A stretch of 64,000 nt of DNA from Macrostomum hystrix (GCA_950097015.1 CATNEN010000039.1:3534001-3598000); one strand, 5' to 3'; positions 13,388-36,906 are shown, counted from the stretch's first letter. Made by a program: numbers and translations. The notes: a model not told the origin generated them from the sequence alone.

Positions 13388-13654
<267 letters not shown>

Positions 13655-14490
13655 TTCGCTGTGCCGCTCCATTTCTTTCTTTTAATTGCTGCTATTGTAT
13701 TTTCTATATTTGTGGTCTTATTTAACTTACTAATTATTTTGCCTTTATGTACCTGCTAAACTGCAGTCAGATTGAAATTACCATGCAGTTACCTTAGTGA
13801 TGTGTGGCAAAATATTTGCTTTAGTTTTAACTACGTTGCTTCTGGCAATTACTTGCGTGGGACGCTCATTATCAGTGGTTTCTTCGTCAACTTAGCAAGA
13901 TTGTTTGTGCTAGACTGATAACTCATGCCATTCACTATTTGTTGTCAAATTATTTCCTACTTGCTCTTATTTGTCTTTTTACGTGAAATTGTTCAAATAT
14001 GAAATACACTCTTTAACTAACTGTGAGCTGAGGTCAAGTCCGAGTGAAGACAAAAGTAGAAGCCTTGACTTCGAATTGAGGCACCGGGGAATCAGGAAAT
14101 AGTATTTTATGCTATATATTTGGGAACAGGTCATCTTACATGTTTAGATGCCGACCTAACAGAGAGAAAGTACGTACGAGCGTATAAGTTCCTAAAAATA
14201 GGGCAAGTTCGTTTTATTGCTGTTCCATTGCAAATGTGTGTGATGTGTTTTTTTACCTCTTGTTGTATTCATTTCGGGATTTTATCCCACCCATTGGTCT
14301 GAAATGCTTTTCCACTTTTCTTTAAGAAGTAGTGTAAAAGCTTTCAGCCAACCTTTGTCACTAGCCCTGTTAACTGATTGGTGGTACCAATGATCCGTGC
14401 AATCAAACTTGCGAAGACCTATCATGCAGATGTTTTCCCCGGACACTAGACTCGTTGGCTGTTTCCTTACTTCCGTGCTTCAGTCGTTTC

Positions 14491-14803
14491 CTTCGATACT
14501 TCAGTGTAGCATCTGTTTCCTTCAGATACTTCAGTGTAGCATCTGTTTCCTTCAGATACTTCAGTGTAGCATCTGTTTCCTTCAGATACTTCAGTGTAGC
14601 ATCTGTTTCCTTCAGATACTTCAGTGTAGCATCTGTTTCCTTCAGATACTTCAGTGTAGCATCTGTTTCCTTCAGATACTTCAGTGTAGCATCTGTTTCC
14701 TTCAGATACTTCAGTGTAGCATCTGTTTCCTTCAGATACTTCAGTGTAGCATCTGTTTCCTTCAGATACTTCAGTGTAGCATCTGTTTCCTTCAGATACT
14801 TCA
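14491..14803. repeat. 30-bp tandem minisatellite (CTTCAGATACTTCAGTGTAGCATCTGTTTC, ~10 copies)
   Basis: Directly visible; explains four spurious periodic ORFs. Confidence 0.95.
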
Positions 14804-15556
14804 ATCAGTGATTTTCCGGTGTCCCGGTGTTTCCTTTGTCGAGACATTTCACCCCTACTTCACGATACTTCAGTGTCTCATTCTGAATTATCCACCCGAG
14901 GAAGGGTATAAAATTTTTTTAGATATTCGTTTGAAAACCAACTGTTAAAAGCCTGTACCTACCTGAGCTAAAACTTTGCAATGAATTGTTCCGCCTATTG
15001 CGCTAAACAACCAATCTGTTTAGGCTAGCCGTAGCTTAACCGCCGCCACCGCCGCTTCTGCCGTCGGCCTCTGCCGGCTTCAGTCTGTCGCCGCAATCAC
15101 GGGTCGTGGCCTCGCGTCCCTGACTGCTTCGCGTCTTGCTAAGCCTTGTAAGCAATAAAAGAACTCATCTTTTTTGCAATCAACTCGCCCATCTGCAATT
15201 CCACTTCGAAGTGCCATCTCATGATCTCACTGTCACTGGTCTGACTGGCTCTCAGAAAAGTTATCATCAAAATACTTCATTCCCTGTTACTGTTGTCTTG
15301 GGTCGTCGGATTTGATAAGATTTTATCGACATGGTTGAGGCAAGCAGACAATAGATGTTGCAGATATATTTGGAGATTGTCTTGTTTCCATGCAAGCTCG
15401 ATTTAAATCAACTCAAATTTTCGAAGCTTGATAGGTTCAAATAAATTCTGGACATCTATTGTCTGTCTTGTTGCAGTACATTTAGTATCGACCTGGATTT
15501 AATTTACGAACCTGACTTTGAACATTCGAGTACACATGCACAGTACATTGTATTCC

Positions 15557-15565
15557 CAGGTAAGT
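15557..15565 (+). other. Consensus 5' splice donor (CAG|GTAAGT) upstream of the microprotein array
   Basis: Perfect 9-nt donor consensus; use not demonstrated. Confidence 0.4.
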
Positions 15566-15981
15566 AAATTTTAAGTTTGCCAACAATTAGACAATCAAAA
15601 CACTTATATTTGCAACTAGTATTTAGTGAAACAAATTAACGCTTGCGACCTGCGAATTTGAGCAAATCATTAAGGTTAGGTGTTGGGTAAGACCTGAGTG
15701 ATGCGTATTTTGGTTACTGCACTTTGCTGATTTACTCAGGTGGTTCGGAAAACAGGTTAGAAGAATAATAATGAGTAATTGTGAAAGGCTAGTTAAAAGT
15801 GGGAGCTGGAGAGTGTGCTGTAACGGCAGGTTAGAGTGGGAGCTGTTCTGTAAATGTAGGGAGACTAATAACTATGCAGTAATGTCAGTGAGAAATTAGA
15901 GGCTTTGCTGTAATGGCAGGGAGGGATTGGATTGCTGTTATGGTTACGGAGAGAGTGGAATAGCTGGGGCGCTCACCCGAT

Positions 15982-16043
15982 CCAGCCGATGCCGGCAATG
16001 ACGCCAAGCAGCAGGTGGCGATACCAAGGACGGCCAGAATGAA
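15982..16043 (+). pseudogene. Decayed fragment of the 37-aa microprotein ORF
   Basis: CCAGCCGATGCCGGCAATGACGCCAAGCAGCAG..GTGGCGATACCAAGG aligns to array ORFs with an internal deletion; no start codon. Confidence 0.75.
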
Positions 16044-16267
16044 TGCGCTGTAATGTGCGGGGTGGTTGGAAGCTGTGCTGTTAAGTTTTGACAGTGAGAG
16101 CTGCTGTTAGTGAAGGGCATAATTAGAAAGAGATAGGTAGGCTTGCTGCTATCAAGTGAAGGCTCGGATTATATTGCAAGTCAGGAACACAATAAAAATA
16201 TTTGTTTTTAAAATTCAGTATGGGCCTATCCAACGAAACCAATAGCAACAAACTTGTCTCACCCGCA

Positions 16268-16439
16268 ATGAAACTCGAAACCAGCAAAGGACGCCAAGAA
16301 GAAAGCGCCCGCTTCGCCAGCGGCTCCCGGCCAGCCGCAGCAGAAGCAGCCCGCTGGTGGCGGAGCCGCCAAGTCGCCGGCCGCACCATCGTCATCTCCA
16401 GGCACCGGCAAGGCGGCCGACAAGCCCGTCAAAAAGTAG
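16268..16439 (+). CDS. Divergent K/A/P-rich paralog of the microprotein (~56 aa), needs a 1-nt correction after the ATG
   Basis: Removing one A from ATGAAAC gives MNSKPAKDAKKKAPASPAAPGQPQQKQPAGGGAAKSPAAPSSSPGTGKAADKPVKK*; start context CGCAATG and acceptor TTCAG at 16218; sequencing indel or pseudogene. Confidence 0.5.
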
Positions 16440-17409
16440 ATCTCACTGTCCGACCGTCGGGTACAATTTAGTTCAGTTGCACACCTGATGCGCAATTCGT
16501 TATTATCGTAGTACCTGCCCAGTAAGGGTCACTCTTGTGTCATAGAAAACAATTGGCCTTCTTAATGCAGTGGCGACTGCGTAGTAGTAACTCAACGACT
16601 TGAACTCACTGACTCGGCATAAGCAAGTTAAAAGACCCAGCGAGTGTTTTTCACCCGCTATCCGAGCTTAGAAGCAAATAATTAATATAATGTTTGACCC
16701 TAAATCGTCTACTATTAGTACCAATGCATGTTCAAATGCTTAAATATTTCCCCACTGCACAAACAGTTAGTAGATCTAATAATATACTTTTATGTGATTT
16801 AATTTTGAGTTGCATCTTTTGCAATGCGCTGAGCTGAAATCTAAATTGTTATGTCCAAAATGCTAATATTTTAACTCTATATCTAAGCGAAGCAGCATCA
16901 AACTTCAAACTCATCTAACAGTACAACTCAATTAAGCCATGTAGACAAAACAGTTATTAGCTGTATCATATTTTGCATATTAAAAACTTCATTAAACACT
17001 AACATCTATTAGATAAAAAGATACATATTTAATCTAATTTTCGACCGCGGAATGTTTTTAGGTCCATTTTTACTGTGTAAACACGCCTAATAAAGAAATA
17101 TTCTTTGACTTCGACACCACGTATTTATATAGAATATACTATTTCTAGTACAGCTTTACGATATTATTTATTTCATAAGAGGCCAGGACGTTTCTGGCAA
17201 CAAGTTTTTTTGTTTCTCAGCCTTGCATAATAAGAGACCCAGGGACTAGAACACTTCTGTGCTTTTCTATCTAGTTAGGTCTGCACTATGTTGGTACTTT
17301 CAATGCTTTCATCTTGCCTCTGTTCAAGCAGTAACAGCCTAGCCAGACATTCTTATTCATAAAATTGCAATACCGCTTTCAGCTTTAAGCATTCCGCTAC
17401 AAATCCACA

Positions 17410-17523
17410 ATGCCCGCCAAGAAAGCCGACGCCAAGAAGCCAGCCGATGTCGGCAAGGACGCCAAGCAGCAGCCGGCGAAGACCGAAGGTGGCGATGCCA
17501 AGGCCGGTCAGAAGAAGAAGTGA
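17410..17523 (+). CDS. 37-aa K/A/D-rich microprotein, copy 1
   Basis: MPAKKADAKKPADVGKDAKQQPAKTEGGDAKAGQKKK*; acceptor AG at 17382; AATAAA at 17745. Confidence 0.8.
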   Translation: MPAKKADAKKPADVGKDAKQQPAKTEGGDAKAGQKKK

Positions 17524-18187
17524 TCGGCTCTGACTGATTTGCCACCTGCCTGGTTGATGAGTTCGATCAGTAGACCCAGCTGATAGTGTATCCGTATTCA
17601 TATTTGCTGTCTCGTATCATACTGTACACTAATGTAGTCATGCCGTAATTACACTGTAACAGGTGTGTGAGTTGCCAGGTGCAGACGCATTTGTGTCGCA
17701 GGTGGTGCCCATCAAATCGTCCTGAAATATTTGTACTTGTAATTAATAAAGCATCGCTGAGCAGCCTCCATTGGTTCTGACTCGCTTGTTCGTATTTAAA
17801 CCGCAACTGTAATTTTTTGTTTCGATTATTTGTTAGTGCTACTACTGGTAGAGTAGTTTGTGAGGCATTTGTGATAAAGACAGCGTCTTTTAACTTCTCG
17901 CCTCCAGCTTGTGGGAATTAGAACAGAGTGACCATTGACACCACGCGGAGAGTGGCAATGGTACCAGCGGAGAGCTCATTGGTACCAGGGGAGTTGGTCA
18001 TTGGTACCAGGGGAGTTCTCTTAACAAAATATGTAATGTTAACCGGATATTATCTATAGCTTACTTGCATCTTTTAAAGAGCTAACTTGTTTTGTTTAAC
18101 ATAGCTTACAGCTATAATTTCCTACAGTTATTTACAGTAAACCGTTCTCTGATTTGCAGCTCTAGCATTAACTCCCAGCCAGCCACA

Positions 18188-18301
18188 ATGCCCGCCAAGA
18201 AAGCTGACGCCAAGAAGCCAGCCGATGCCGTCAAGGACGCCAAGCAGCAGCCGGCGAAGGCTGAAGGTGGCGACGCCAAGGCCGGTCAGAAGAAGAAGTG
18301 A
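18188..18301 (+). CDS. 37-aa microprotein, copy 2
   Basis: Intact 114-nt ORF; acceptor TTGCAG ends at 18159. Confidence 0.8.
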   Translation: MPAKKADAKKPADAVKDAKQQPAKAEGGDAKAGQKKK

Positions 18302-18812
18302 TCGGCTCTGACTGATCGATGAGTTCGATCAGTAGACTCAGCTGATAGTGTAACCGTATTCATATTTGCTGTCTCGTATCATACCTTATGATACTGTATA
18401 CTGTACTCATATGCAGTAATTACTTTGTCCTATCTGTATCAGGTGTGTGAGTTGCCAGATGCGGACGCATTTGTGTAGCAGGTGGCGCCCATTAAATCGT
18501 TCTGAAATATTTGTACTCGTAACTAATAAATTATCGCTGAGCAGCCTCCATCGGTTCTGACTCGCTTGTTCGTATTTTTTACTCAACTTGTTGGTGCTTC
18601 AATTCTTTCTATTATTTTTGGTCTTTTGTGCTGCTGTTGAAAGAAAGAATGTTTATTACTAACGCAGATTATTTAATTTTCTTATATCTTTAGAAGGCCT
18701 AAAATAATTCCTTATGTCCAGCAGTAAGAATATTGTGACCGCAATTTATATCACTTTTTCATAAACCTTTTCGTCGTTTGCAGCTCTAGCATCAGCTTCC
18801 AAGCCAGCCTCA

Positions 18813-18926
18813 ATGCCCGCCAAGAAAGCCGATGCTAAGAAGCCAGCCGATGCCGGCAAGGACGCCAAGCAGCAGCCGGCGAAGGCCGAAGGTGGCGACG
18901 CCAAGGCCGGTCAGAAGAAGAAGTGA
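18813..18926 (+). CDS. 37-aa microprotein, copy 3
   Basis: Intact 114-nt ORF with upstream TTTGCAG acceptor. Confidence 0.8.
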   Translation: MPAKKADAKKPADAGKDAKQQPAKAEGGDAKAGQKKK

Positions 18927-19453
18927 TCGGCTCTGACTGATTTGCCAGCTGCCTGGTCGATGGGTTTAATCAGCAGACCCAGCTGAGCACTGTAGTGTAC
19001 TCCCGAATTCGTATTTGCTTTTCCACGTACTATACCATACGCTACTGTAGTATACATAGATAAGTCATGTATTGTCTTACACTGGCTTACCTGTAACAGG
19101 TTTTTTAGTTGCCAGGTTCGTAACCGGTGGAAGCTCTTAATAAAGTCCTGAAATATTTTTACTCGTTATTAATAAAACATCGCTGAGCAGCCTCCGTCAG
19201 TTCTGAGTCGCTTGTTCGTATTCTTTTACCCAACTTGTTGGTGCTTCCATTCTTTGTCAAATTTATGTGTTAAGGACTGCTGTTAAAAGGGAGAATAATA
19301 AACTTTAAAACTTATTTTATCTAGTAAGTTTTTACCTTTAGAAGAGCTAATAATTTCTCATGTCGAGCGGTGTGAAAACCTTCCTTTCTCACCGCCTTTG
19401 TTGTAATCTGTTTCCTCAATTGCAGCTCTAGCATCAACTCCCAGCCAGCCACA

Positions 19454-19567
19454 ATGCCCGCCAAGAAAGCCGACGCCAAGAAGCCAGCCGATGCCGGCAA
19501 GGACGCCAAGCAGCAGCCGGCGAAGGCCGAGGGCGCCGACGCCAAGGCCGGTCAGAAGAAGAAGTGA
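19454..19567 (+). CDS. 37-aa microprotein, copy 4
   Basis: Intact ORF; unique 3' flank. Confidence 0.8.
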   Translation: MPAKKADAKKPADAGKDAKQQPAKAEGADAKAGQKKK

Positions 19568-20160
19568 TAGGCTCCGATATCGTCAATATGTTGAATCTAT
19601 TGAGCATGAGTAGGCGAAGCGGTTTTTCAGTACATTCTTTGAAATTTTACTCTATCTTATTGTACTTATTGTAGTCACACCGTTGTACTTGTACTTGTCT
19701 TGTTATAATAATTAGTATAGTGTAATCGTATATCTATACTCGCATTTGCTCGCAAATCTATTACTCTAACGAATCCAGAAGGCGCGTACATAACTACCAC
19801 ATTCTGCTGTTTTACCTGTATGTTGAGTTACTGATTCTTACTCGTAGAATTTGAAAGTAAATTTATATTTCGCAGCTTCCCTTCGTTATTTTAGTCCGCG
19901 TTTTGTTTTGCCTTGTTTTATTGTTAACCTCACTTGTGCTGTTCGTCTCGTGTATGCAGGCCCAGTGTTCTCCTGAATGTTAAGCAGCACACGCATGGAA
20001 ACAAGCCGAAAATGGTTTTTGTAGTTGGTAGGAGTTGACCTTTAGAATTTTAGCAGACTAGAATATACTAAATTCTAATTTTGCAGAAATTTTGTTGATA
20101 ACATACTATGTCTAAATCAACTCAAATTTCAGCTCTAGCAGCTCCAAGACCAAGTCCAAA

Positions 20161-20274
20161 ATGCCCGCCAAGAAAGCCGACGCCAAGAAGCCAGCCGATG
20201 CCGGCAAGGACGCCAAGCAGCAGCCGGCGAAGACCGAAGGTGGCGACGCCAAGGCCGGTCAGAAGAAGAAGTGA
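20161..20274 (+). CDS. 37-aa microprotein, copy 5
   Basis: Intact ORF; upstream TTTCAG acceptor. Confidence 0.8.
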   Translation: MPAKKADAKKPADAGKDAKQQPAKTEGGDAKAGQKKK

Positions 20275-20978
20275 TCGGCTCTGACTGATTTGCCACCTGC
20301 CTGATTGATTAGTTCGATCAGTAGACTCAGCTGAGCACAGCAGTGTATCCGTATTCCTATTTGCTCTGTCTCATATCATACTGTACGCTACTGTATTCTG
20401 CATATAGTAAACCATGTACTGTATTTACACTGGCCAATCGGTAACAGGTGTGTGAATTACCAGGTACGGACTCATTTGTGTAGCAGGTGGCGCCCATCAA
20501 ATTGTCCTGAAATATTTGTACTTGTAATTAATAAAGCATCGCTGAGCAGCCTCCATCGGTTCTGACTTGTTTATTCGTAGTTAAAGCCAGACTGTTTTTG
20601 TTTATTTCTTTAGCGAACCTTGATTTCCATGCTATTTGGTAGCTTTGGACTCCCAGCTTTTCTAGCATGTCCTTCAATGCCTTTTCACTTAGACTTAGTA
20701 AGCGTTTGAATGTGAGTGTCTGATATATTAGGATTTAATTTCCTAATGGTATTGTTGTCTAACAAAAGAGCCCTACATGTGAACTTTAAGTTAGATCATG
20801 CAGAGCATTTTAGATTTAGGTATAAAACATCAAGCATTATATTTTGTACTACTCTTGGCCATCACAGAATCATCGGTGTCAAATCTAATAGTAATTTTTG
20901 CCAATTTTTACGGACTCGCGGATTATTCCACACAAATCATGCTCTTTTTCAGCTCTAGCAGCTCCCTTATCAATCACA

Positions 20979-21092
20979 ATGCCTGCCAAGAAAGCCGACG
21001 CCAAGAAGCCAGCCGATGCCAGCAAGGACGCCAAGCAGCAGCCGGCGAAGGCTGATGGCGGCGACGCCAAGGCCGGTCAGAAGAAGAAGTGA
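20979..21092 (+). CDS. 37-aa microprotein, copy 6
   Basis: Intact ORF; upstream TTTTTCAG acceptor. Confidence 0.8.
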   Translation: MPAKKADAKKPADASKDAKQQPAKADGGDAKAGQKKK

Positions 21093-21708
21093 TCGGCTCT
21101 GACTGATTTGCCTACCAGGTCGATGAGATCAGTAGACTCATCCGATAGTGTAACCTTATTCATATTTGCTGTCTCGTATCATACAGTACGCTAATGTAGT
21201 CATGTAATGTAATTACATTGTCCTATCTGTAACAGGTGTGTGAGTTGCCAGGTGCAGACGCATTTGTGTCGCAGGTGGTGCCCATCAAATCGTCCTGAAA
21301 TATTTGTACTTGTAATTAATAAAGCATCGCTGAGCAGCCTCCATTGGTTCTGACTCGCTTGTTCGTATTTAAACCGCAACTGTAATTTTTTGTTTCGATT
21401 ATTTGTTAGTGCTACTACTGGTAGACTAGTTTGTGAGGCATTTGTGATAAAGACAGCGTCTTTTAACTACTCCGCTTCCAGCTTGTGGGAATTAGAACAG
21501 AGAGCTCATTGTTACCAGTGTAGTGCTCTTAACAAAATATGTAATGTTAAACTCATATTATCTATAGCTTGTTTTTTTCTTTTGAAGAGCTAACTAGTTT
21601 TGTTAAGTAATGAAAATATTACGACCATAATTTCCTACAGTTGTTTACAGTAAACTGCTCTCTGATTTGCAGCTCTAGCATCAACTTCCAGCCAGCCAGC
21701 CAGCCACA

Positions 21709-21822
21709 ATGCCCGCCAAGAAAGCCGACGCCAAGAAGCCAGCCGATGCCGGCAAGGACGCCAAGCAGCAGCCGGCGAAGACCGATGGCGGGGACGCCAA
21801 GGCCGGTCAGAAGAAGAAGTGA
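21709..21822 (+). CDS. 37-aa microprotein, copy 7
   Basis: Intact ORF with upstream TTTGCAG acceptor. Confidence 0.8.
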   Translation: MPAKKADAKKPADAGKDAKQQPAKTDGGDAKAGQKKK

Positions 21823-22450
21823 TCGGCTCTGACTGATTTGCCACCTGCCTGATTGATGAGGTTGATCGGTAGACTCGGCTGAGCACAGCAGTGTATCCGT
21901 ATTCATATTTGCTGTCTCGTATCATACCGTATGATACTGTATACTGTACTCATATGCAGTAATTACATTGTCCTATCTGTATCAGGTGTGTGAGTTGCCA
22001 GATGCGGACTCATTTGTGTAGCAGCTGGAGCCTATTAAATCGTTATGAAATATTTGTACTCGTATCTAATAAATCATCGCTGAGCAGCCTCCATCGGTTC
22101 TGACTCGCTTGTTCGTATTTATGCAGCAAGTGTTACTTTTCGTTTCGATTATTTGTTAGTGCTACTACTGGTAGAGTAGTTTGTGAGGTGTATTTGATAA
22201 AACAGCCTCATTTTAACTTCTCCGGTACTCGTTGCTCATGATCAAGCCCGACTTAGGAATTAGCCTCTTGAAAAAAATGTAATGTTAAACGCTATTATCT
22301 ATTGTTTACTTTTATCTTTTATAGAGCTTACTTCAGTGCTATCTGATTGTTGAGCAGTAAACGCTTGCGATCATAATTTCTTAAAGTTGTTTACAGTAAA
22401 CTTTTCCATCATTTGCAGCTCTAGCATCAACTCCCAGACAGCCTGCCACA

Positions 22451-22564
22451 ATGCCCGCCAAGAAAGCCGATGCCAAGAAGCCAGCCGATGTCGGCAAGGA
22501 CGCCAAGCAGCAGCCGGCGAAGGCCGAAGGTGGCGACGCCAAGGCCGGTCAGAAGAAGAAGTGA
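22451..22564 (+). CDS. 37-aa microprotein, copy 8
   Basis: Intact ORF with upstream TTTGCAG acceptor. Confidence 0.8.
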   Translation: MPAKKADAKKPADVGKDAKQQPAKAEGGDAKAGQKKK

Positions 22565-23117
22565 TCGGCTCTGACTGATTTGCCACCTGCCTGATTGATG
22601 AGGTTGATCGGTAGACTCAGCTGAGCACAGCAGTGTATCCGTATTCATATTTGCTCCGCATCGTATCATGCAGCATGCTACTACTGTAGTCTACACGACT
22701 CTACATATACTAAACTATGTACTGTAATTACACTGGCCTATCTGTAACAGGTGTGTGAGTTGCCAAGTGCAGAAGCATTTTTAACCGTTGGCGCCCTTCA
22801 ATTTGGCCTGAAATATTTGTACTCGTAACTAATAAAGCATCGCTGAGCAGCCTCCATCGGTTCTGACTCGCTTGTTCGTATTCTTTTACTTAATTTGTTA
22901 AGTGCTTCAATTCTTTCTATTTTTTTGTATTTTTAGGGCTGTAAAAAGTAACAAAGCTGAATATTAAACGCAGATAATTTAATTTACTTTTTTCATTACC
23001 AGAGCTTAATTTTTATGTCCAGCAGTTAGGAGATTGTGACCGTAATTTGTCACGTTTTTTCAATAAGCTGTTTCCTCATTTGCAGCTCTAGCATCAGTTC
23101 CTAACCAGCCAGCCACA

Positions 23118-23231
23118 ATGCCCGCCAAGAAAGCCGACGCCAAGAAGCCAGCCGATGCCGGCAAGGACGCCAAGCAGCAGCCGGCGAAGACCGAAGGTGG
23201 CGACGCCAAGGCCGGTCAGAAGAAGAAGTGA
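23118..23231 (+). CDS. 37-aa microprotein, copy 9
   Basis: Intact ORF; unique 3' flank. Confidence 0.8.
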   Translation: MPAKKADAKKPADAGKDAKQQPAKTEGGDAKAGQKKK

Positions 23232-24071
23232 TCGGCTCTGACCGAATTCCGGTCTCAGAGTTTGATCAGCATATACTTTTTTATCACAGGTGATGCATTG
23301 TTTATGTGTATGATGTGCTTGTGGCTTCCTGATCTAATAGCGGTTATTGTAATTTGACCTCGACTGTATTTGTATCACTGCTGAGGCAGGCGGGCAGTTA
23401 TTTATCACAGAAGCATTTTACTGTGAGTTAGCCGGTTCTTGGCGTGCATTGAGGGTCATTGTTTAAGTTAAACAAATAAGTCTCATTGCTGTATTTTCTC
23501 GAGATTTGCTTGTCCAAATGTAATTCGTTCTGGTCGAGACTTTCTGCACAAAACCCTGACTGGGCTCCTTGCTGTATGGAGTACAGTGTCAGTTTGTTCT
23601 CCATAGTTACAACTCTGCACCAAAACTTTCATGGTTTAGTTTCTTCTGTGCCTGGCCCCAGTTCGTAGTTTGACTGAATATCAAGGTATTTGCTGCGGGC
23701 ATTGCAAGTAGCAGTATTCAACAATTTCATAAGCAATTATATTAAGTCAAATATAAAGCAATTTAATTCGCCTTGGTTGTGAGATTATTGCCAACTTATA
23801 TTAAAATTACGCTTCTTGTCGCTGTGTTAAACTTAAATTTCGCACTTCATAGATCAGTGAGGCTAATAACTTTTAAACTTACTTTCAATTTCAGCTGTTA
23901 CCTCGTCGTATTAAGCATAACATCGAACTAAGTGAAAAATGCCAACAACTAGCATTGTAGAGACACTATATTGACGAATTCTTGAGAAGAATAAAGAAGA
24001 AAATGTTGCAATTTTTATCAATAATATTTACACCCCGATTCCAGCTTTAAGCATCCAGTTACAAATCCACA

Positions 24072-24185
24072 ATGCCCGCCAAGAAAGCCGACGCCAAGAA
24101 GCCAGCCGATGCCGGCAAGGACGCCAAGCAGCAGCCGGCGAAGGCTGAAGGTGGCGATGCCAAGGCCGGTCAGAAGAAGAAGTGA
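24072..24185 (+). CDS. 37-aa microprotein, copy 10
   Basis: Intact ORF; 5' leader resembles copy 1. Confidence 0.8.
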   Translation: MPAKKADAKKPADAGKDAKQQPAKAEGGDAKAGQKKK

Positions 24186-24846
24186 TCGGCTCTGACTGAT
24201 TTGCCACCTGCCTGGTCGATGAGTTCGATCAGTAGACTCAGCTGATAGTGTATTGTTACTTGCTGTCTCGTATCATACAGTACGCTAATGTAGTCATGCC
24301 GTAATTAAACTGTAACAGGTGTGTGAGTTGCCAGGTGCAGAAGCATTTGTGTAGCAGGTGGCGCCGTTAAATCGTCCTAGAATATTTGTACTCGTAACTA
24401 ATAAAACGTCGCTGAGCAGCCTCCATCGATTCTGACTCGCTTGTTCGTATTTAAACCGCAACTGTTGGGGTTTTTTACTCTTTCGTGTTAACCAAACACT
24501 GGTACAGTAGTTTGTGAGGCTTTTGTTATCAGGACAGCCACTTATAAGCTACTCTGGTACCTGTGCTCATATTCAAGCCCGACTTTAGAAATTAGCTATC
24601 TGTGGAAATCAGAGCAGTCAACTAATTGACACCTCGTGAGCGCTCATTGATACCAGTGGAGTGCTCTTAACAAAAACGTAATGTTGAACGCTCTTTTCTA
24701 TAGTTTATTTTTTATTTTAAAGAGCTCACTTCTGAGCTATCAGATTTTTAAGTAAAAAGCTTACGACCATGATTTCTTAAAGTTTTTTGCAGTAAACTGT
24801 TTCCTCATTTGCAGCTCTAGCATCAACTCCCAGCCAGCCAGCCACA

Positions 24847-24960
24847 ATGCCCGCCAAGAAAGCCGACGCCAAGAAGCCAGCCGATGCCGGCAAGGACGCC
24901 AAGCAGCAGCCGGCGAAGACCGAAGGTGGCGACGCCAAGGCCGGTCAGAAGAAGAAGTGA
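24847..24960 (+). CDS. 37-aa microprotein, copy 11
   Basis: Intact ORF with upstream TTTGCAG acceptor. Confidence 0.8.
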   Translation: MPAKKADAKKPADAGKDAKQQPAKTEGGDAKAGQKKK

Positions 24961-25490
24961 TCGGCTCTGACTGATTTGCCACCTGCCTGATCGATGAGGT
25001 TGATCGGTAGACTCGGCTGAGCACAGCAGTGTATCCGTATTCATATTTGCTGTCTCGTATCATACCGTATGATACTGTATACTGTACTCATATGCAGTAA
25101 TTACATTGTCCTATCTGTATCAGGTGTGTGAGTTGCCAAGTGCAGAAGCATTTTTAACCGTTGGCGCCCTTCAATTTGGCCTGAAATTATTGTACTCGTA
25201 ACTAATAAAGCATCGCTGAGCAGCCTCTATCGGTTCTGACTCGCTTGTTCGTATTCTTTTACTTAATTTGTTAAGTGCTTCAATTCTTTCTATTATTTTT
25301 GGTATTTACGGCTGTAAAAAGTAACAAAGCTGAATATTAAACGCAGATAATTTAATTTACTTTTTTCATTACCAGAGCTTACTTTTTATGTCCAGCAGTT
25401 AGGAGATTGTGACCGTAATTTGTCACGTTTTTTCAATAAGCTGTTTCCTCATTTGCAGCTCTAGCATCAGTTCCTAACCAGCCAGCCACA

Positions 25491-25604
25491 ATGCCCGCCA
25501 AGAAAGCCGACGCCAAGAAGCCAGCCGATGCCGGCAAGGACGCCAAGCAGCAGCCGGCGAAGACCGATGGCGGGGAGGCCAAGGCCGGTCAGAAGAAGAA
25601 GTGA
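25491..25604 (+). CDS. 37-aa microprotein, copy 12
   Basis: Intact ORF with upstream TTTGCAG acceptor. Confidence 0.8.
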   Translation: MPAKKADAKKPADAGKDAKQQPAKTDGGEAKAGQKKK

Positions 25605-26206
25605 TCGGCTCTGACTGATTTGCCACCTGCCTGATCGATGAGTTCGATCAGTAGACCCAGCTGATAGTGTATCCATATTCATATTTGCTGTCTCGTATCA
25701 AACTGTACGCTACTGAAGTCATGTACTGTAATTACACTGTAACAGGTGTGTGAGTTGCCAGGTGCGGACGCATTTGTGTGGCAGGTGGCGCCCATTAAAT
25801 CGTTATGAAATATTTGTACTCGTATCTAATAAATCATCGCTGAGCAGCCTCCATCGGTTCTGACTCGCTTGTTCGTATTTATGCAGCAAGTGTTACTTTT
25901 CGTTTCGATTATTTGTTAGTGCTACTACTGGTAGAGTAGTTTGTGAGATGTATTTGATAAAACAGCCTCATTTTAACTTCTCCGGTACTCGTTGCTCATG
26001 ATCAAGCCCGACTTAGGAATTAGCCTCTTGAAAAAAATGTAATGTTAAACGCTATTATCTATTGTTTACTTTTATCTTTTATAGAGCCTACTTCAGTGCT
26101 ATCTGATTGTTAAGCAGTAAACGCTTGCGATCATGATTTCTTAAAGTTGTTTACAGTAAACTTTTCCATCATTTGCAGCTCTAGCATCAACTCCCAGCCA
26201 GCCACA

Positions 26207-26320
26207 ATGCCCGCCAAGAAAACCGATGCCAAGAAACCAGCCGATGCCGGCAAGGACGCCAAGCAGCAGCCGGCGAAGACCGAAGGTGGCGACGCCAAGG
26301 CCGGTCAGAAGAAGAAGTGA
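26207..26320 (+). CDS. 37-aa microprotein, copy 13
   Basis: Intact ORF with upstream TTTGCAG acceptor. Confidence 0.8.
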   Translation: MPAKKTDAKKPADAGKDAKQQPAKTEGGDAKAGQKKK

Positions 26321-26996
26321 TCGGCTCTGACTGATTTGCCACCTGCCTGATTGATTAGTTCGATCAGTAGACTCAGCTGATAGTGTATCCGTATTCATAT
26401 TTGCTGTCTCGTATCATACAGTACGCTAATGTAGTCATGTACTGTAATTACACTGTAACGGAAGTGTGAGTTGCCAGGTGCAGAAGCATTTTTGTAACCG
26501 TTGGCGCCCTTCAAATTGTCCTGAAATATTTCTACTCGTAATTAATAAGTCATCGCTGAGCAGCCTCCATCGGTTCTGACTCGCTTGTTCGTATTTAAAT
26601 CGCAACTGTTCGTGTTGTTTCTTTTGTTTTACCCTTTAGTGTTTACACTGGTCGAGTAGTTAGTGAGGCTTTTTGTGATATGGGCAGCCACTTATAAGCT
26701 ACTCCGGTACCCGTTGCTCATGATCATTCCTGACTTAAGGAATTTTCAATCTGTGGGAATCAGAACAGAGTGCCCATTGACACCAGGGGAGAGCTCATTG
26801 TTACCAGTGTAGTGCTCTTAACAAAATATGTAATGTTAAACTCATATTATCTATAGTTTGTTTTTTCTTTTGAAGAGCTAACTAGTTTTGTTGAGTAATG
26901 AAAATATTACGACCATAATTTCCTACAGTTGTTTACAGAAAACTGTTCTCTGATTTGCAGCTCTAGCATCAACTTCCAGCCAGCCAGCCAGCCACA

Positions 26997-27110
26997 ATGC
27001 CCGCCAAGAAAGCCGATGCTAAGAAGCCAGCCGATGCCGGTAAGGACGCCAAGCAGCAGCCGGCGAAGGCCGAAGGTGGCGATGCCAAGGCCGGTCAGAA
27101 GAAAAAGTGA
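26997..27110 (+). CDS. 37-aa microprotein, copy 14
   Basis: Intact ORF; mostly unique 3' flank. Confidence 0.8.
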   Translation: MPAKKADAKKPADAGKDAKQQPAKAEGGDAKAGQKKK

Positions 27111-27847
27111 TCGGCTCTGACTGATTTGCCACCTGCCTGATTGATGTGTTACATAATTGGACTGACTCTTCTTTGAGTCCATAATTTAGTGTATCCGTAC
27201 AATTAAATGCGCTGACTTTTTATTCTTACCCTAAGCGCACTTTACTTACCTCCTCGATCGCAGTTGCGTAATAGTAGCAGGTAAAATATGTTATATGTAT
27301 GTTACAAGCGTAGTGGTATATCGCAGGGAGTACTCGTTTTTACAGCAGACCTTTAGCGGAATAAAACCGACACCCATGACCGACTGTGTCATTCGTTGTG
27401 AAATAAGACAAATTCAAAGTAAATTTATAATGCAAGCTCTGGCTTATTTGTTTAATTGCCTACTCTCAACTTCGAACCCATTAGCAGTCTTAGTCTCGTG
27501 TAATAAGTGGTTGCCCACTTTGATTTCTAGCCGGTCGTATTGTTGAAGTCATGTTCTAGGGCCCGAAACTTGGGTTCGACGTAGCGCGAAGTGACACCAC
27601 TCGTTGCAGCGGTTTAAGGACCCTAGGTTACTGGTTCACTGAACTTGAATAATTTACAATGGCCTGAAGGAAATTTGTCAGCTAGCTCCTTGATTCAATA
27701 TTAACCAGTTGTTTGGCTTGGAGAGTCATTGGTACTCGTAACTGTTGGACCACATAAATATTATTTACTTGTTGAAGCGATTCGAATGTATTTAGTATAT
27801 AATTTTTTTATATTTCAGCTCTAGCAGCTCCAAGACACAAGTCCACA

Positions 27848-27961
27848 ATGCCCGCCAAGAAAGCCGATGCCAAGAAACCAGCCGATGCCGGCAAGGACGC
27901 CAAGCAGCAGCCGGCGAAGGCCGACGGCGGCGACGCCAAGGGCGGTCAGAAGAAGAAGTGA
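27848..27961 (+). CDS. 37-aa microprotein, copy 15
   Basis: Intact ORF; 5' leader resembles copy 5. Confidence 0.8.
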   Translation: MPAKKADAKKPADAGKDAKQQPAKADGGDAKGGQKKK

Positions 27962-28512
27962 TCGGCTCTGACTGATTTGCCACCTGCCTGTTCGATGAGT
28001 TCGATCAGTAGACTCAGCTGATAGTGTATTGTTACTTGCTGTCTCGTATCATACTGTACGCTAATGTAGTCATGCCGTAATTACACTGTAACAGGTGTGT
28101 GAGTTGCCAGGTGCAGACGCATTTGTGTAGCAGGTGGCGCCCATCAAATCGTCCTGAAATATTTGTACTCGTATCTAATAAATCATCGCTGAGCAGCCTC
28201 CATCGGTTCTGACTCGCTTGTTCGTATTTTCTCTCACCTTGTTGGCTTAAGTGTTTGTGTCCATTTATATTGTGGCTTTTGTTCTAGTTCTTATGGGGCA
28301 ATCTGAATCAGAGTCTCTAGATGCCATGATAGAAACTCACATTTGCACGAGCTATTTCCAAGTAGCAAATTCACGTTCTTAACTTTCGATATTGTTGCAA
28401 GCAAGCAAATTAAGCAAATTAGTTAAGTAGCTGTTTTTTTTAACAAAAATGTCTAATATTTTAATCTAATATAATTATCTATTTCAGCTATTGCCGCAGC
28501 CAGCCAGCCACA

Positions 28513-28626
28513 ATGCCCGCCAAGAAAGCTGACGCCAAGAAGCCAGCCGATGCCGGCAAGGACGCCAAGCAGCAGCCGGCGAAGGCTGAAGGTGGCGATG
28601 CCAAGGCCGGTCAGAAGAAGAAGTGA
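28513..28626 (+). CDS. 37-aa microprotein, copy 16 (last)
   Basis: Intact ORF; acceptor AG at 28487; AATAAA near 28725. Confidence 0.8.
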   Translation: MPAKKADAKKPADAGKDAKQQPAKAEGGDAKAGQKKK

Positions 28627-29837
28627 TCGGCTCTGACTGATTACGCGAGCAGTATTTTCACTTTGTTGTATGCGTGTCGGTGAAAAAAAATTTACCCTCA
28701 TTTGCTTTGCGGTTTAATTAATTCAATAAAAATCGAATTCACATGTGTGTTTCAATATGTTTATCGGTTCTAGCATTGAAATTGTATAGCGCAAAAGAAA
28801 ACGTTGCTGCAGTTACGGTTTCTGTTTAATTTTATTTGGCTTTTTCGACTAAACTTTCTACCTGACGAGCTTGCTATAAAGCCGTAAGAGCAGTCGTGTC
28901 TCACCTATGTTAAGACGATTTAATAAGCGATAAACGAGGGACTTCATCAGCATGGGAACTTTGTGCAATTATTAGAGGGCCGAAGTCTCAGAGTTACGGA
29001 TCACCTATGTAGTATCACCCGGCCTCTCTTTAACTGTGGAAAGGATTTGAGTTTGAGTTCCGCAAGTTACCGTAAATTCTAGTTATTTGCGTTTTGCCGT
29101 TGACATTGATTTTTTCACGACTATCAGGAGTGAAGCAGTAACTTTTTACTGTCCTTTAATCACTTCTCAAGAAAAGTACTGTCCGGTTGAGTTTGGCCTG
29201 GCTGGTACACCAACCTGAGAACTGCGGATCTGATGCTATAAATTATGTATTGAATTATTGCCAACGGTTGAAGGCTTGCGTCTTAATAATTTCAATCAAG
29301 CGAGAAAGTGAAAGGTTATTTAGCAGAGTTCATTTAAATCAGCATGCCAAAAGCCATTTAGAGTAGCTCAAACCTGGCTGGCAGCGTGCACCGACCGACC
29401 CCTGGCTAAATAGGCTGGGTGGGTTAAGTGTAGGTGCACTAGTCCCTGAAGGCATAATACATAACTACGAGTATATTGTATTATGTCTTCAACAAATGGC
29501 TTCATGTGCTACGAACAACTACCATGGACTCTTCCCGTCAGAAGGAGTTGAGAACCCCCCTGCAACCTGAATCTTCACTCATTGATTACCACCAATGGAA
29601 AATTTTATCGGCTGAAATATCTAGTTACTAGATCGATACAAAAATGAAAAACCGCGAATGACGCAATGCACTCTGCTCACCCACCCCGACTCCGTAACCA
29701 GAGAAACGAAAGAGAGTCAGTAGCATGACAGTATGTCACCTGACAGTAGCATGGAAATTCGGGTGTGTTATTAAATAACAAATGTTGCTAGTACGCTCGT
29801 ACAAGCCGAACTTAATATGAGAACTCATACAAAACTG

Positions 29838-30874
29838 TCAATAGCGCGTGTAGCAACCACGAACCTCAACCAGAGCGGAAACTCGGCGTGGCATTCCCAA
29901 AATTAGGCGCCGCAAGAAATTCTGAGGTAGCTGCTGCCATGCATTGGTCATCGCCTGGCGTAGCTCCGCAAGATTCTGGGGCGGGGCATTTGACGCTGGA
30001 TGGTGCATTTCATGAAATCCCAAACATGCTCAATGGGATTCATGTCAGGTGATCGCGATGGCCACCTCAGAGTTCGCAAGTTCAGTTGCTCCTTCAGCTG
30101 AGCCACAGCGGCAGCTCGGTGCGGCGGGGCGTTGTCGTCCTGGAGAATGCAGTTCTGAACCCCGCCAAATTCAGCATTGACAAAAGGCAGAAGATGCATT
30201 TTCAGTAAATTAGCGTAGACGCCTGCCGTTACATTTGAGGCCAGAAAGACAAGCTCCGTCTTGGCGTTCAACGTGATCCCCGCCCAAACATGCACCGAGG
30301 CTGAATGTCCGTCGGTGGCTTGAACGCGCTGTTACAGCATTTCCTGCCGCGGCTCTCGCCAAACACGAACGCGACCGTCTGCCTGAAAGAGGCGGAAGCG
30401 GCTCTCATCAGTGAATACGACGCGTCGCCATTGCTGCTGCCTCCAGTGAATTCGCTGCATCGCCCACAGCTCTCGTGTGGCGCTGTGAGCAGGCGTCAGT
30501 CGGGGTCGCTTGCGCATCTTCCGGCAGCGCAGCCCAGCCGCCCAACTTCTCCGTCGAATTGTTTGGGCGCTCAAGATGTTCCCGCGCCTGCTTCTTTCAC
30601 CCCAGATGAGTCGAAGCAATGTGGCAGGTAAGGTGGGGTTTCCCCTCACAATTCGCAGCAGTCGCCGATCAGCCCTTGCTGTGCTGCGCAGATGACGGCG
30701 CTGGACTCCACGACTTGCGTGCGCGACACTGCCAGTGTCTCTGGACTTCTGCAGAAGGCTGCGAATCGTCGAACGTGATCTGCCGAATTGACGGGCTACT
30801 GCTCGGATGGACATTCCGGCCTCAAGCATGCCTATGGCTCGCCATCGTTCACCATCGGTCATGTGGCGAACCAT
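29838..30874 (-). mobile_element. Tc1/mariner transposase, frameshifted (pseudogene)
   Basis: N-terminal HTH (GMSIRAVARQFGRSRSTI) and DDE motifs VVFTDESRF, LQDDNAPPH, SRSPDMNPIEHVW split over three frames; TIRs not identified. Confidence 0.9.
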
Positions 30875-32245: not shown

Positions 32246-33338
32246 TTAGTAGGAATCGGCAGACTGACTGGAGAGCTTCGTAATCTTCCGCTTCCTTCCG
32301 CGCTCCGAATCGCCAGAAACTTCCTTAGCCAGGTTCCTCATCATGCAGTTGAAGAACGCTTTAGACAATTCTGTCTTCACATCATGTCCTTGGGTGCATG
32401 TTGTGAGGTGGGTGAATGATTCTAGAAAAAGTGCGTCGTCGGTCATTTCGTCCACGAGTCCACAAAATACCAGCTGCTGCTGCTCAGCGCACATGAACTC
32501 CTTCTTCAATGTCTCCTTTCGCCGAATCTCTTAGAAAATTTTCCAGCAATGAGTGCCCAAAGCAAAAGCAAACTCAGTTGGCTGGCAAAGACCACCTCGG
32601 TTGATCTGGTCAATGAAGGAGGAGGCCTGTGCTGGAACCCAGTCAACATCCAACTGCGCGGCAGCATCTTCCTCCAACAGCAGTTCTCTGCACGAATCAC
32701 ACCTTCGGTTTTTCACCAGAGTTCGGGCAACAGCGGCAATGACGTAATAAATTACCGTCTGATCAGCAGGAGCTGGCTCGCAATCCATGTCTAGCTTTAC
32801 GGCCAAGTTGTTGACACAAGTACAGCTTGCCGTCGCACAGAGAGATTTGAAAACCTGCTGGCTTACTCTCCTCCTGATCAAGTCTGGAGCGCACGTCGTG
32901 TAGGCTGCAATCAGCAATTGAGTCGGCTTCCTGAAAGGTGTCGATGCTGCTTTGCAGGGCACTGAGTTCCCGCTCCAGACGTTCAGAAGAAGTCGCCGCT
33001 GTTGATCTCTGCGGCTTTTTTTCAGAGGACAGGTAGGATGGAGCGTTGGGAAAGATGGACGGCACAGCCCCTTGTTTCAAAAGGCGTCCTAGTAGTTGCT
33101 CCTTGCTCTTCTTACGTGCGGCGTTTGTATCCATGGAACTTTCAACGAAGTCGTCCGGATGAAAATGTCTGGAGCAAATCCTTGAGTTTTTTGTTGGCTC
33201 AAACTCCTGCCTTGGATTGGCTCGCTTCCACTTTTCCAGAAGAGCGGGGTCCTTCCATGGAAAACTATGGAAGCTGACTCTTGCGACAGTTCCATTTGCT
33301 CGATTTGAGCATCCGTACGCTGAGCAAGACTTCACCAT
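32246..33338 (-). mobile_element. Internally deleted THAP9/P-element transposase (THAP domain joined to C-terminal region, catalytic core absent)
   Basis: THAP C2CH pattern MVKSCSAYGC..FHSFP..W..CSRHF..AVPSIF; C-terminal VIYYVIAAVAR..CDSC..INRGGLCQPT with a frameshift and a premature stop at 32531. Confidence 0.8.
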
Positions 33339-33413
33339 TAGTGGTCTTCACTCTCAGAGTCTCAGACAATTATTAGTGCTAGTTAGCAAAAACAAGGAGA
33401 GATCGTTTTTAGG

Positions 33414-36400: not shown

Positions 36401-36906
36401 CACAAGCTGCATTTGATTCGAGTAATGGCTATGCTTTTTATAAATATTCGAATGAAGAAGCTGGCTAAGGATCTTTCACGCGTTGGAAGAAAACCCGGCA
36501 AGAGGCAAAGGCTGCTTCGAACAGCGATTTTTCTTAATTTGTAATCAGCGTATTCGCATATGGAGCCTGGTAAGTTATGGCTTCAATGCATTCTGTTTAA
36601 GCTTATTCCCGTGATAAACTATATATTTGCCATTAAATGCGTGCAAAAAATTCTAGATAAATTAAAAATGAATCTGTAGTTGTTAATTTGTTAATCTTAT
36701 TTCTTACTGAGTCTGAATTTTCAATAGTTACGAACATAAAGAAAAAAGAGACCCCGACAAGCTGAGTTGGCTGAGGGTAAGAAGAAAGGCCCGGGCACAA
36801 TTATCGATCGTGGGGGAGTGGGCACTGGGGTGCCACTTTTCCTACTAGGAAAAAGGCACAACTTTTTTACCCTCATGCGCAGTCTAGTTATATTTCTTGT
36901 TCTGTG
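33414..36906 (+). mobile_element. P-element/THAP9 DNA transposon with 32-bp TIRs; transposase pseudogene ~33738-36544
   Basis: TIR CACAGA(C/A)CAAGAAATATAACTAGACTGCGCAT at both ends; THAP domain, ADEMS, WKLPLGYF, DVPHMLKLIRN, KMKV, SQDFLE, GWNHNPT, YIAG motifs across several frames. Confidence 0.92.

Follow-up and report, generated by a model that had tools for sequence, protein, structure and literature searches.

A transcribed tandem array of 16 reading frames for a putative lysine-rich microprotein in the flatworm Macrostomum hystrix

Why does a flatworm chromosome carry 16 near-identical copies of one very short reading frame side by side, and is a peptide made from them? The question is raised by a window of 64,000 nucleotides (nt) of the Macrostomum hystrix genome (GCA_950097015.1, CATNEN010000039.1:3534001-3598000; positions below are counted from its first letter), in which an array of open reading frames (ORFs) for a 37-residue peptide spans 17410-28626. 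The answer that we favour, with a probability of about 0.55, is that the 16 frames specify a genuine polycationic microprotein, translated and amplified for dosage, whose action is bulk binding. A length of 37 residues lies below the usual gene-calling cut-offs and, if translated, the peptide is likely to form a major part of Macrostomum cells that has gone unstudied. Work on regeneration, stem cells and reproduction uses Macrostomum as a laboratory model, with RNA interference, in situ hybridisation and transgenesis at hand. A single double-stranded RNA directed at the shared ORF would reach every one of the 16 copies, which makes the function directly testable. The locus is also a natural case for studying how flatworm mRNAs handle a start codon carried by a spliced leader (SL), how large an SL operon can become, and how microprotein genes originate and are amplified.

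Intact reading frames and their coding constraint

The 16 ORFs (starts at 17410, 18188, 18813, 19454, 20161, 20979, 21709, 22451, 23118, 24072, 24847, 25491, 26207, 26997, 27848 and 28513) run from ATG to TGA on the + strand, and each measures exactly 114 nt, with no indels and no internal stops. They lie where an earlier note on this DNA, made from the sequence alone, had placed them, and the consensus given there was also reproduced: the peptide contains 11 K, 10 A, 4 D, 4 G, 3 P, 3 Q, 1 E and 1 M, with a charge of about +6, a pI of 9.9 and a grand average of hydropathy (GRAVY) of -1.55. Lysine makes up 30% of the residues and D+E 13.5%, glycine accounts for 4/37 (10.8%), and arginine does not occur. 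D-A-K is repeated, as are P-A-K-K / K-K-P-A strings, and both a signal peptide and hydrophobic residues are absent. The disorder proposed in the note is borne out by this hydropathy and by AlphaFold2 models of ten peptide variants, which showed no secondary structure (mean pLDDT 60.6, pTM 0.13).

Because these 16 intact, equal-length ORFs adjoin untranslated regions (UTRs) full of indels, the array is far beyond chance expectation. The ORF is the best-conserved part of the transcript, with a mean pairwise identity of 0.91-0.99, compared with 0.55-0.71 in the 3'UTR and 0.35-0.55 upstream, in keeping with the strong divergence of the flanks that the note had described. A DNA search of the whole assembly (220,453,370 bases, 42 contigs) found the ORF confined to the array and to one decayed fragment; the 3'UTR and spacer DNA of the units had no genomic location besides the array. 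A transposon or dispersed repeat, which the note had named as a challenge to its own reading, is ruled out by this restriction of ORF, 3'UTR and spacer DNA to one place.

Nineteen nucleotide sites vary across the 16 ORFs, of which 12 are third, four second and three first codon positions (third-position excess, binomial P = 0.007). Differences between copies are mostly synonymous or small and conservative, as previously claimed; the amino-acid changes are A/T, A/V, G/V, G/S, E/D, G/A, D/E and A/G. The proportions of synonymous (pS) and nonsynonymous (pN) differences were calculated by the Nei-Gojobori method for all 120 pairs of ORFs. In the ORF frame pS was 0.133 and pN 0.022 (pN/pS 0.16), against pN/pS values of 1.9 and 2.2 in the other two sense frames. 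The decayed fragment serves as an internal control:

15981..16043, + strand: decayed 17th copy, corresponding to ORF nt 31-107 with a 16-nt deletion and a 1-nt insertion; ATG lost; inside an intron of the gene upstream of the array.

This relic carries two indels, compared with none in the 16 intact ORFs. On the grounds of the pN/pS of 0.16, the third-position bias, the absence of indels beside out-of-frame length changes in the UTRs, and the decay of the relic, we conclude that the peptide sequence is under purifying selection, as judged from the pattern of differences; the note had proposed the same. The ORF thus has the coding-type conservation by which microproteins are recognised, and a translated, functional peptide appears highly probable.

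Transcription, trans-splicing and unit structure

Evidence for transcription came from assembled contigs of four public runs aligned to 15400-21399, an interval that takes in units 1-6. The contigs are from whole animals and are not raw reads, and such data cannot reveal precursor RNAs, poly(A) sites or the strand of single reads. Runs X5 and X6 (organism C) yielded long contigs with zero mismatches on this interval. Their depth was 14,000-37,000 over the ORFs, 300-2,600 in copy-specific 3'UTR contigs and 12-117 in the upstream flank, and it was 0 at 19000-19399. Since genomic DNA is incapable of such a depth profile, X5 and X6 are RNA. RNA coverage of the copies, suggested in the note as a check, is therefore present, and the very high transcript level from a 16-copy family agrees with the dosage amplification that it had proposed.

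The contigs that begin at 18784, 19426, 20133 and 20953 have ahead of them letters that end in ...GACTCAATTTATTGCAT(G), and GACTCAATTTATTGCAT is the 3' end of the 35-nt Macrostomum lignano SL as published (PMC8629364). In units 3-6 the junction with the SL falls precisely on the CAG acceptor, which precedes the ATG by 25-36 nt, and contigs also show the SL joined to the 5'UTR type that only units 9 and 12 have (loose ends at 19441 and 20156). Each of units 2-6 has copy-specific RNA evidence. The genome contains 32 occurrences of the 17-nt SL tail, none of them near the 64-kb window; most belong to tandem arrays on three other contigs (C15, C17 and C42), where the period is about 11.6-11.7 kb. 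SL RNA genes, for example at C17:2600-2900 on the minus strand, contain a full SL exon with the same sequence as the 35-nt SL published for M. lignano and, next to it, a GTAAG donor. The SL thus stands at an AG acceptor and is encoded elsewhere, as in SL trans-spliced genes of flatworms. Because the SL tail is found at the exon starts of the units and the SL genes lie on other contigs, we regard it as practically certain that the array units are transcribed from the + strand and SL trans-spliced. At C7:8556422-8556438 an SL sequence is followed by GC instead of the GT donor; it may be a retrocopy of a trans-spliced mRNA.

The runs of organism A (X1/X2), a related sample, contain the same SL-5'UTR-ORF sequence with one mismatch. 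In X1/X2 contigs at 18192, 20183 and 20984 the ORF words run into longer coding text rich in lysine, alanine and proline (K/A/P-rich; up to 255 nt), and a search of the M. hystrix genome found this text absent there. These contigs may be chimeric, or they may come from a longer member of the family in another, related taxon.

Each unit consists, in order, of an SL acceptor, a short 5'UTR, the ORF and a 3'UTR of roughly 250 nt with AATAAA. The acceptor is a pyrimidine-rich tract followed by TT(G/T)CAG, and the exon begins with CTCTAG in 13 copies, CTTTAA in copies 1 and 10, and CTATTG in copy 16. The 5'UTR is 25-36 nt long and lacks ATG in 16/16 copies; its length varies by 4-nt CCAG-type indels, so that copies differ in the reading frame between acceptor and ATG. 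The start context (A at -3, CC after ATG) and the stop are kept in all 16. Unit lengths are 625-954 nt, and the distance from poly(A) signal to next acceptor is <1 kb. In the list below, units 7 and 8, 10 and 11, and 13 to 16 are delineated from sequence only.

17383..17750, + strand: unit 1; acceptor TTTCAG; 5'UTR 27 nt from CTTTAA; coding sequence (CDS) 17410-17523; AATAAA 17745-17750; 3'UTR contigs 17505-17658 with 0 mismatches.
18160..18530, + strand: unit 2; acceptor TTGCAG; 5'UTR 28 nt from CTCTAG; CDS 18188-18301; AATAAA 18525-18530; copy-specific 3'UTR contig 18437-18562, depth 466-578.
18784..19176, + strand: unit 3; CDS 18813-18926; AATAAA 19171-19176; SL tail right before 18784 in X5 and X6 contigs.
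19426..19887, + strand: unit 4; CDS 19454-19567; unrelated 3' region, canonical AATAAA/ATTAAA absent; SL tail before 19426; copy-specific contig 19541-19887, depth 304-436.
20133..20535, + strand: unit 5; CDS 20161-20274; AATAAA 20530-20535; SL tail before 20133; contig 20327-20533, depth about 1400.
20953..21323, + strand: unit 6; CDS 20979-21092; AATAAA 21318-21323; SL tail before 20953.
21673..22073, + strand: unit 7; 5'UTR 36 nt; CDS 21709-21822; AATAAA 22068-22073.
22419..22836, + strand: unit 8; CDS 22451-22564; AATAAA 22831-22836.
23086..23995, + strand: unit 9; CDS 23118-23231; unrelated 3' region; first AATAAA 23990-23995, 3' end uncertain; 5'UTR type (shared with unit 12) SL-joined in contigs.
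24045..24405, + strand: unit 10; 5'UTR from CTTTAA; CDS 24072-24185; AATAAA 24400-24405.
24815..25209, + strand: unit 11; CDS 24847-24960; AATAAA 25204-25209.
25459..25833, + strand: unit 12; CDS 25491-25604; AATAAA 25828-25833; 5'UTR type of units 9 and 12 SL-joined in contigs.
26179..26549, + strand: unit 13; CDS 26207-26320; variant signal AATAAG 26544-26549.
26961..27365, + strand: unit 14; CDS 26997-27110; 3' region unrelated past about 55 nt; AATAAA 27360-27365.
27819..28182, + strand: unit 15; CDS 27848-27961; AATAAA 28177-28182.
28488..28730, + strand: unit 16; 5'UTR from CTATTG, no immediate stop after the SL AUG; CDS 28513-28626; unrelated 3' region; AATAAA 28725-28730.

Twelve copies have a common 3'UTR, with about 80% column identity. 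In these the poly(A) signal lies about 215-270 nt past the stop (AATAAA, but AATAAG in copy 13) and is closely followed by the invariant block CGCTGAGCAGCCTC. Twelve units have a conserved 8-bp palindromic hairpin (CTGATCGA, 5-nt loop, TCGATCAG) about 30-52 nt past the stop, for example at 24213-24237. Hairpin differences between copies are G-U-compatible only; with no covariation or compensatory pairs among the copies, a conserved 3'UTR RNA structure was not supported, and an Rfam search returned no known RNA family. The regions downstream of copies 4, 9 and 16 are unrelated to the rest, and copy 14 is similar over only about 55 nt; the largely unrelated 3' regions that had been reported for these four copies were thus seen. 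The spacers within 17524-28500 pair by similarity as 1~6, 7~12, 8~11 and 10~13, in a partly mirrored order with all units in the same orientation. Judged from these similarities, simple block duplication fails to account for the order.

Every unit has an acceptor at its start and a poly(A) signal at its end, and exon 1 of the K/A/P-rich gene just upstream of the array has a good donor at 15147. Conceivably, then, the 16 units are alternative last exons of that gene, cis-spliced from its exon 1. At four acceptors and in the 5'UTR type of units 9 and 12, however, it is the SL and not exon 1 that is joined; moreover, copies differ in their acceptor-to-ATG distance by amounts that shift the frame, and the phase of exon 1 misses the ORF frame. 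We consider this explanation as good as dismissed.

The SL ends in AUG, and in 15/16 copies the genomic part of the mature mRNA consequently opens with AUG-CUC-UAG or AUG-CUU-UAA. This Met-Leu-stop upstream ORF closes 20-30 nt ahead of the real start. It is established that the flatworm SL AUG is able to create or disturb reading frames (Cheng et al. 2006, cited in PMC9851317). Like the flatworm mRNAs that use or neutralise the SL AUG, those of the array must handle an SL-borne start codon, with Leu-stop in frame in 15 of 16 copies; unlike them, the SL AUG would here form a two-codon upstream ORF and not the initiator. Because the SL AUG opens only this mini-ORF, ribosomes would reach the real start by reinitiation or leaky scanning, and initiation would take place at the first genomic AUG.

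SL operons of M. lignano mostly contain 2-3 unrelated genes and at most nine, and some begin with a first gene that is not trans-spliced or is differently processed (PMC8629364). The array has the layout by which operons are called in that study, namely SL trans-spliced neighbours on the same strand less than 1 kb apart. It differs in consisting of 16 near-identical cistrons (17 with the upstream gene). The array, probably together with the K/A/P-rich gene, may be transcribed as an SL-resolved polycistron; that it is a single polycistron we propose tentatively, at somewhat less than even odds. As an operon it would comprise 16 cistrons, or 17 with the upstream gene, and would exceed the reported flatworm maximum.

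Relatives and possible role of the peptide

The peptide had no match in Pfam or among PDB sequences at E values up to 10, and none in the ESM Atlas; three of its variants were absent in an exact look-up among about 15 billion predicted proteins. An hmmsearch of 1.84 billion cluster representatives, run with a profile of 10 variants, picked up a single spurious repeat protein (P0001). A word-based protein search with a 57-residue natural ORF containing the peptide and a scan of JGI metagenome contigs with a degenerate DNA pattern were blank, and a full-text literature search for four peptide strings returned no paper on the peptide. For other flatworms these blanks are weak evidence, since such short ORFs are seldom called as genes and the searches did not extend directly to flatworm transcriptomes. 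The family that the note did not recognise thus lacked a match in protein, structure and literature searches; the peptide lies outside every described family detectable in them and is apparently an undescribed microprotein. SL trans-splicing, SL operons, SL-borne AUGs and small basic disordered proteins are all previously known kinds. We class the locus as a lineage-restricted, tandemly amplified microprotein gene, unusual in the size of its same-gene SL array and in the conserved Met-Leu-stop after the SL.

The product would be an unstructured, soluble, intracellular polycation of 36 residues after Met removal, with a mass of about 3.6 kDa (calculated 3,632 Da, or 3,763 Da with Met retained) and a charge of about +6. 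We propose that it binds a polyanion electrostatically, for which we see even odds. Its amplification to 16 copies would reflect a requirement for bulk, stoichiometric amounts, and the copy number would have been selected because the peptide is made in bulk and acts stoichiometrically. We rank RNA/ribosomes as the likeliest target, ahead of chromatin or sperm DNA and, in third place, a protective hydrophilin role. Functions of these three kinds had been named as examples in the note, and they stand as candidates. Cytoplasmic RNA/ribosomes, in the manner of TMA7, small lysine-rich ribosome-associated or 'Hero'-type proteins, would be favoured because of the TMA7-like composition, the adjacent TMA7 gene and the mixed charge typical of small ribosome-associated/Hero-type proteins; a target that is specifically RNA or the ribosome is possible but doubtful. 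TMA7 (PF09072; 64 residues) resembles the peptide in being small, lysine-rich, unstructured and of mixed charge, and short K-A-D-A-K and G-Q...K-K-stop strings occur in both. TMA7 is, however, single-copy and conserved across eukaryotes, whereas the peptide has 16 copies and no detectable relatives, and the PF09072 profile was not matched by the peptide at E values up to 10.

A different role, in chromatin or as a sperm nuclear basic protein, would liken the peptide to the tail of histone H1 or to protamine-like proteins of the lysine type; the testis would produce it in large amounts to neutralise and compact DNA. Histone H1 C-terminal tails and lysine-type protamine-like sperm proteins are Lys/Ala/Pro-rich disordered polycations with PAKK/KKPA-type motifs and are often multi-copy; the peptide has 30% Lys and repeated P-A-K-K / K-K-P-A strings as in the H1 tails. 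Adult Macrostomum worms are largely gonad, and the tandem amplification and very high expression in whole adult worms are in line with such a role. Sperm basic proteins evolve fast and vary in copy number (PMC13148410). Nevertheless, the peptide has only 37 residues, no globular linker-histone domain, no Arg and five acidic residues (13.5%), which does not fit the very high Arg+Lys content and few acidic residues of protamines. No Pfam match to linker-histone (the winged-helix H1/H5 domain, PF00538), protamine or HMG families was obtained, secondary structure was not predicted, and a literature search found no flatworm precedent. We consider this role improbable.

The peptide could also be a protective hydrophilin or 'Hero'/LEA-like peptide, that is, an unfolded solute of high charge by which proteins or membranes are shielded or condensates tuned; the high concentration required would have led to gene amplification. 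Hydrophilins are defined by more than 6% Gly and very high hydrophilicity, and the peptide, at 10.8% Gly and a GRAVY of -1.55, falls within this definition, a likeness of composition only that has no bearing on function. Like Hero proteins and hydrophilins, which are short, highly charged, unfolded, abundant and domain-less and act via bulk physicochemical properties, it has no hydrophobic residues and no predicted structure, combines 11 K with 5 D/E in repeated D-A-K motifs, and is expressed at an extreme level. The known Hero examples, unlike the peptide, have 70-400 residues, are single-copy and were defined in human and fly, and there is no sequence relation. Furthermore, Pfam LEA/hydrophilin repeat motifs were not matched at E values up to 10, three prolines break any amphipathic helix, and to our knowledge M. 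hystrix is not known as desiccation- or freeze-tolerant. A protective role therefore seems quite improbable.

Several observations count against translation and bulk binding. In the antisense frame whose wobble positions coincide with those of the ORF, pN/pS is as low, at 0.13; this frame was excluded because it has no ATG and the RNA is sense, with no other ground. The depth of zero noted above covers the distal 3'UTR of unit 3 (19000-19199) and the spacer ahead of unit 4 (19200-19399). Five acidic residues are unusual in a pure nucleic-acid condenser. The argument from the neighbourhood is weak, as similarity to the neighbouring genes was not significant: at the protein level, comparison with TMA7 gave a BLASTP E value of 32 and a shuffle P of 0.26, and comparison with exon 2 of the K/A/P-rich gene a shuffle P of 0.13. 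At the DNA level, similarity to TMA7 or the upstream gene had a P of about 0.04. Descent from TMA7 or from the upstream K/A/P-rich exon was set aside on these shuffle tests; common descent with either is possible from the sequence comparison.

Finally, the high identity of the ORFs may partly reflect gene conversion, since the ORF is GC-rich (64% versus about 43% in the flanks). Taken further, the peptide would be functionless, with its identity kept by GC-biased gene conversion and with the RNA as the product or the ORF merely regulating the RNA. The GC-rich island fits conversion, and strong conservation is seen, too, in 3'UTR blocks around the poly(A) signal. Gene conversion probably does contribute to the homogeneity and GC richness of the ORF, but it fails to explain the codon-position pattern of the differences: conversion alone gives neither 12/19 third-position differences nor a pN/pS of 0.16. 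The ORF is, besides, the most conserved part of the transcript, with start context and stop kept in all copies, and neither an Rfam match nor covariation in the 3'UTR was found. A functionless peptide is very improbable.

The preferred reading of a translated, amplified microprotein can be carried further. It is unlikely that all of the following would hold together: that a flatworm-restricted 37-residue polycation, whose mRNA family is one of the most abundant in the animal, partners ribosomes/RNA or chromatin stoichiometrically in a way not known before; that it arose locally from the K/A/P-rich tail exon next door; that the array is a 17-cistron SL operon, the largest described in flatworms; and that translation is gated by the Met-Leu-stop mini-ORF opened by the SL AUG.

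Neighbouring genes and other features of the window

Two genes referred to above lie upstream of the array:

13460-13654, + strand: TMA7 orthologue, intact, 64 residues (PF09072, 71.6 bits); 3.7 kb upstream of the array.
15024..15147, + strand: exon 1 of the K/A/P-rich gene; donor CTT/GTAAGC at 15147/15148 supported by a contig boundary; the 5' end is a candidate.
16285..16439, + strand: exon 2 of the K/A/P-rich gene, coding part; acceptor AG 16283-16284; the frame ends with TAG 16437-16439.

The ATG of TMA7 is preceded by an acceptor-like TTTTCAG at 13430-13436. Joined to the SL AUG, the 5'UTR of TMA7 would contain an upstream ORF of six codons that ends in TAG.

The contig boundary that supports the donor of exon 1 lies at 15118, that is, 15147 minus 29, as expected for a k=31 graph branch at a splice donor; the acceptor at 16284 is likewise set by contig boundaries. 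Contigs starting at 16285 carry 146-147 extra 5' letters, which were not located in 15400-16284, and a single contig covers 16285-17411 without interruption, linking the second exon of this gene with the start codon of unit 1. An ATG is lacking in exon 1. Should the AG at 15022-15023 serve as an SL acceptor, the AUG of the SL would share the frame of an ORF that extends through both exons, making the gene a candidate for translation from the SL AUG. The two exons were read and searched separately and not as a joined protein; a word-based protein search with exon 2 found no homologue. Read from exon 1, the N-terminal part of the product would be rich in Ala, Ser, Arg and Leu and free of acidic residues, and looks like a targeting presequence.

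Farther upstream, a near-perfect tandem repeat with a 30-nt unit occupies 14486-14803 (10.6 copies, 99% identity), and a repeat array of about 3.3 kb at 2371-5709 is open in several frames on both strands. The ORFs on either side of the latter, 1690-2331 and 6388-6825, are branched-chain aminotransferase-like by eye. At 29948-30874 (- strand) and 32763-36544, just downstream of the 16 units, lie ORFs of Tc1/mariner-type transposases, and THAP-domain-like ORFs occur on both strands.

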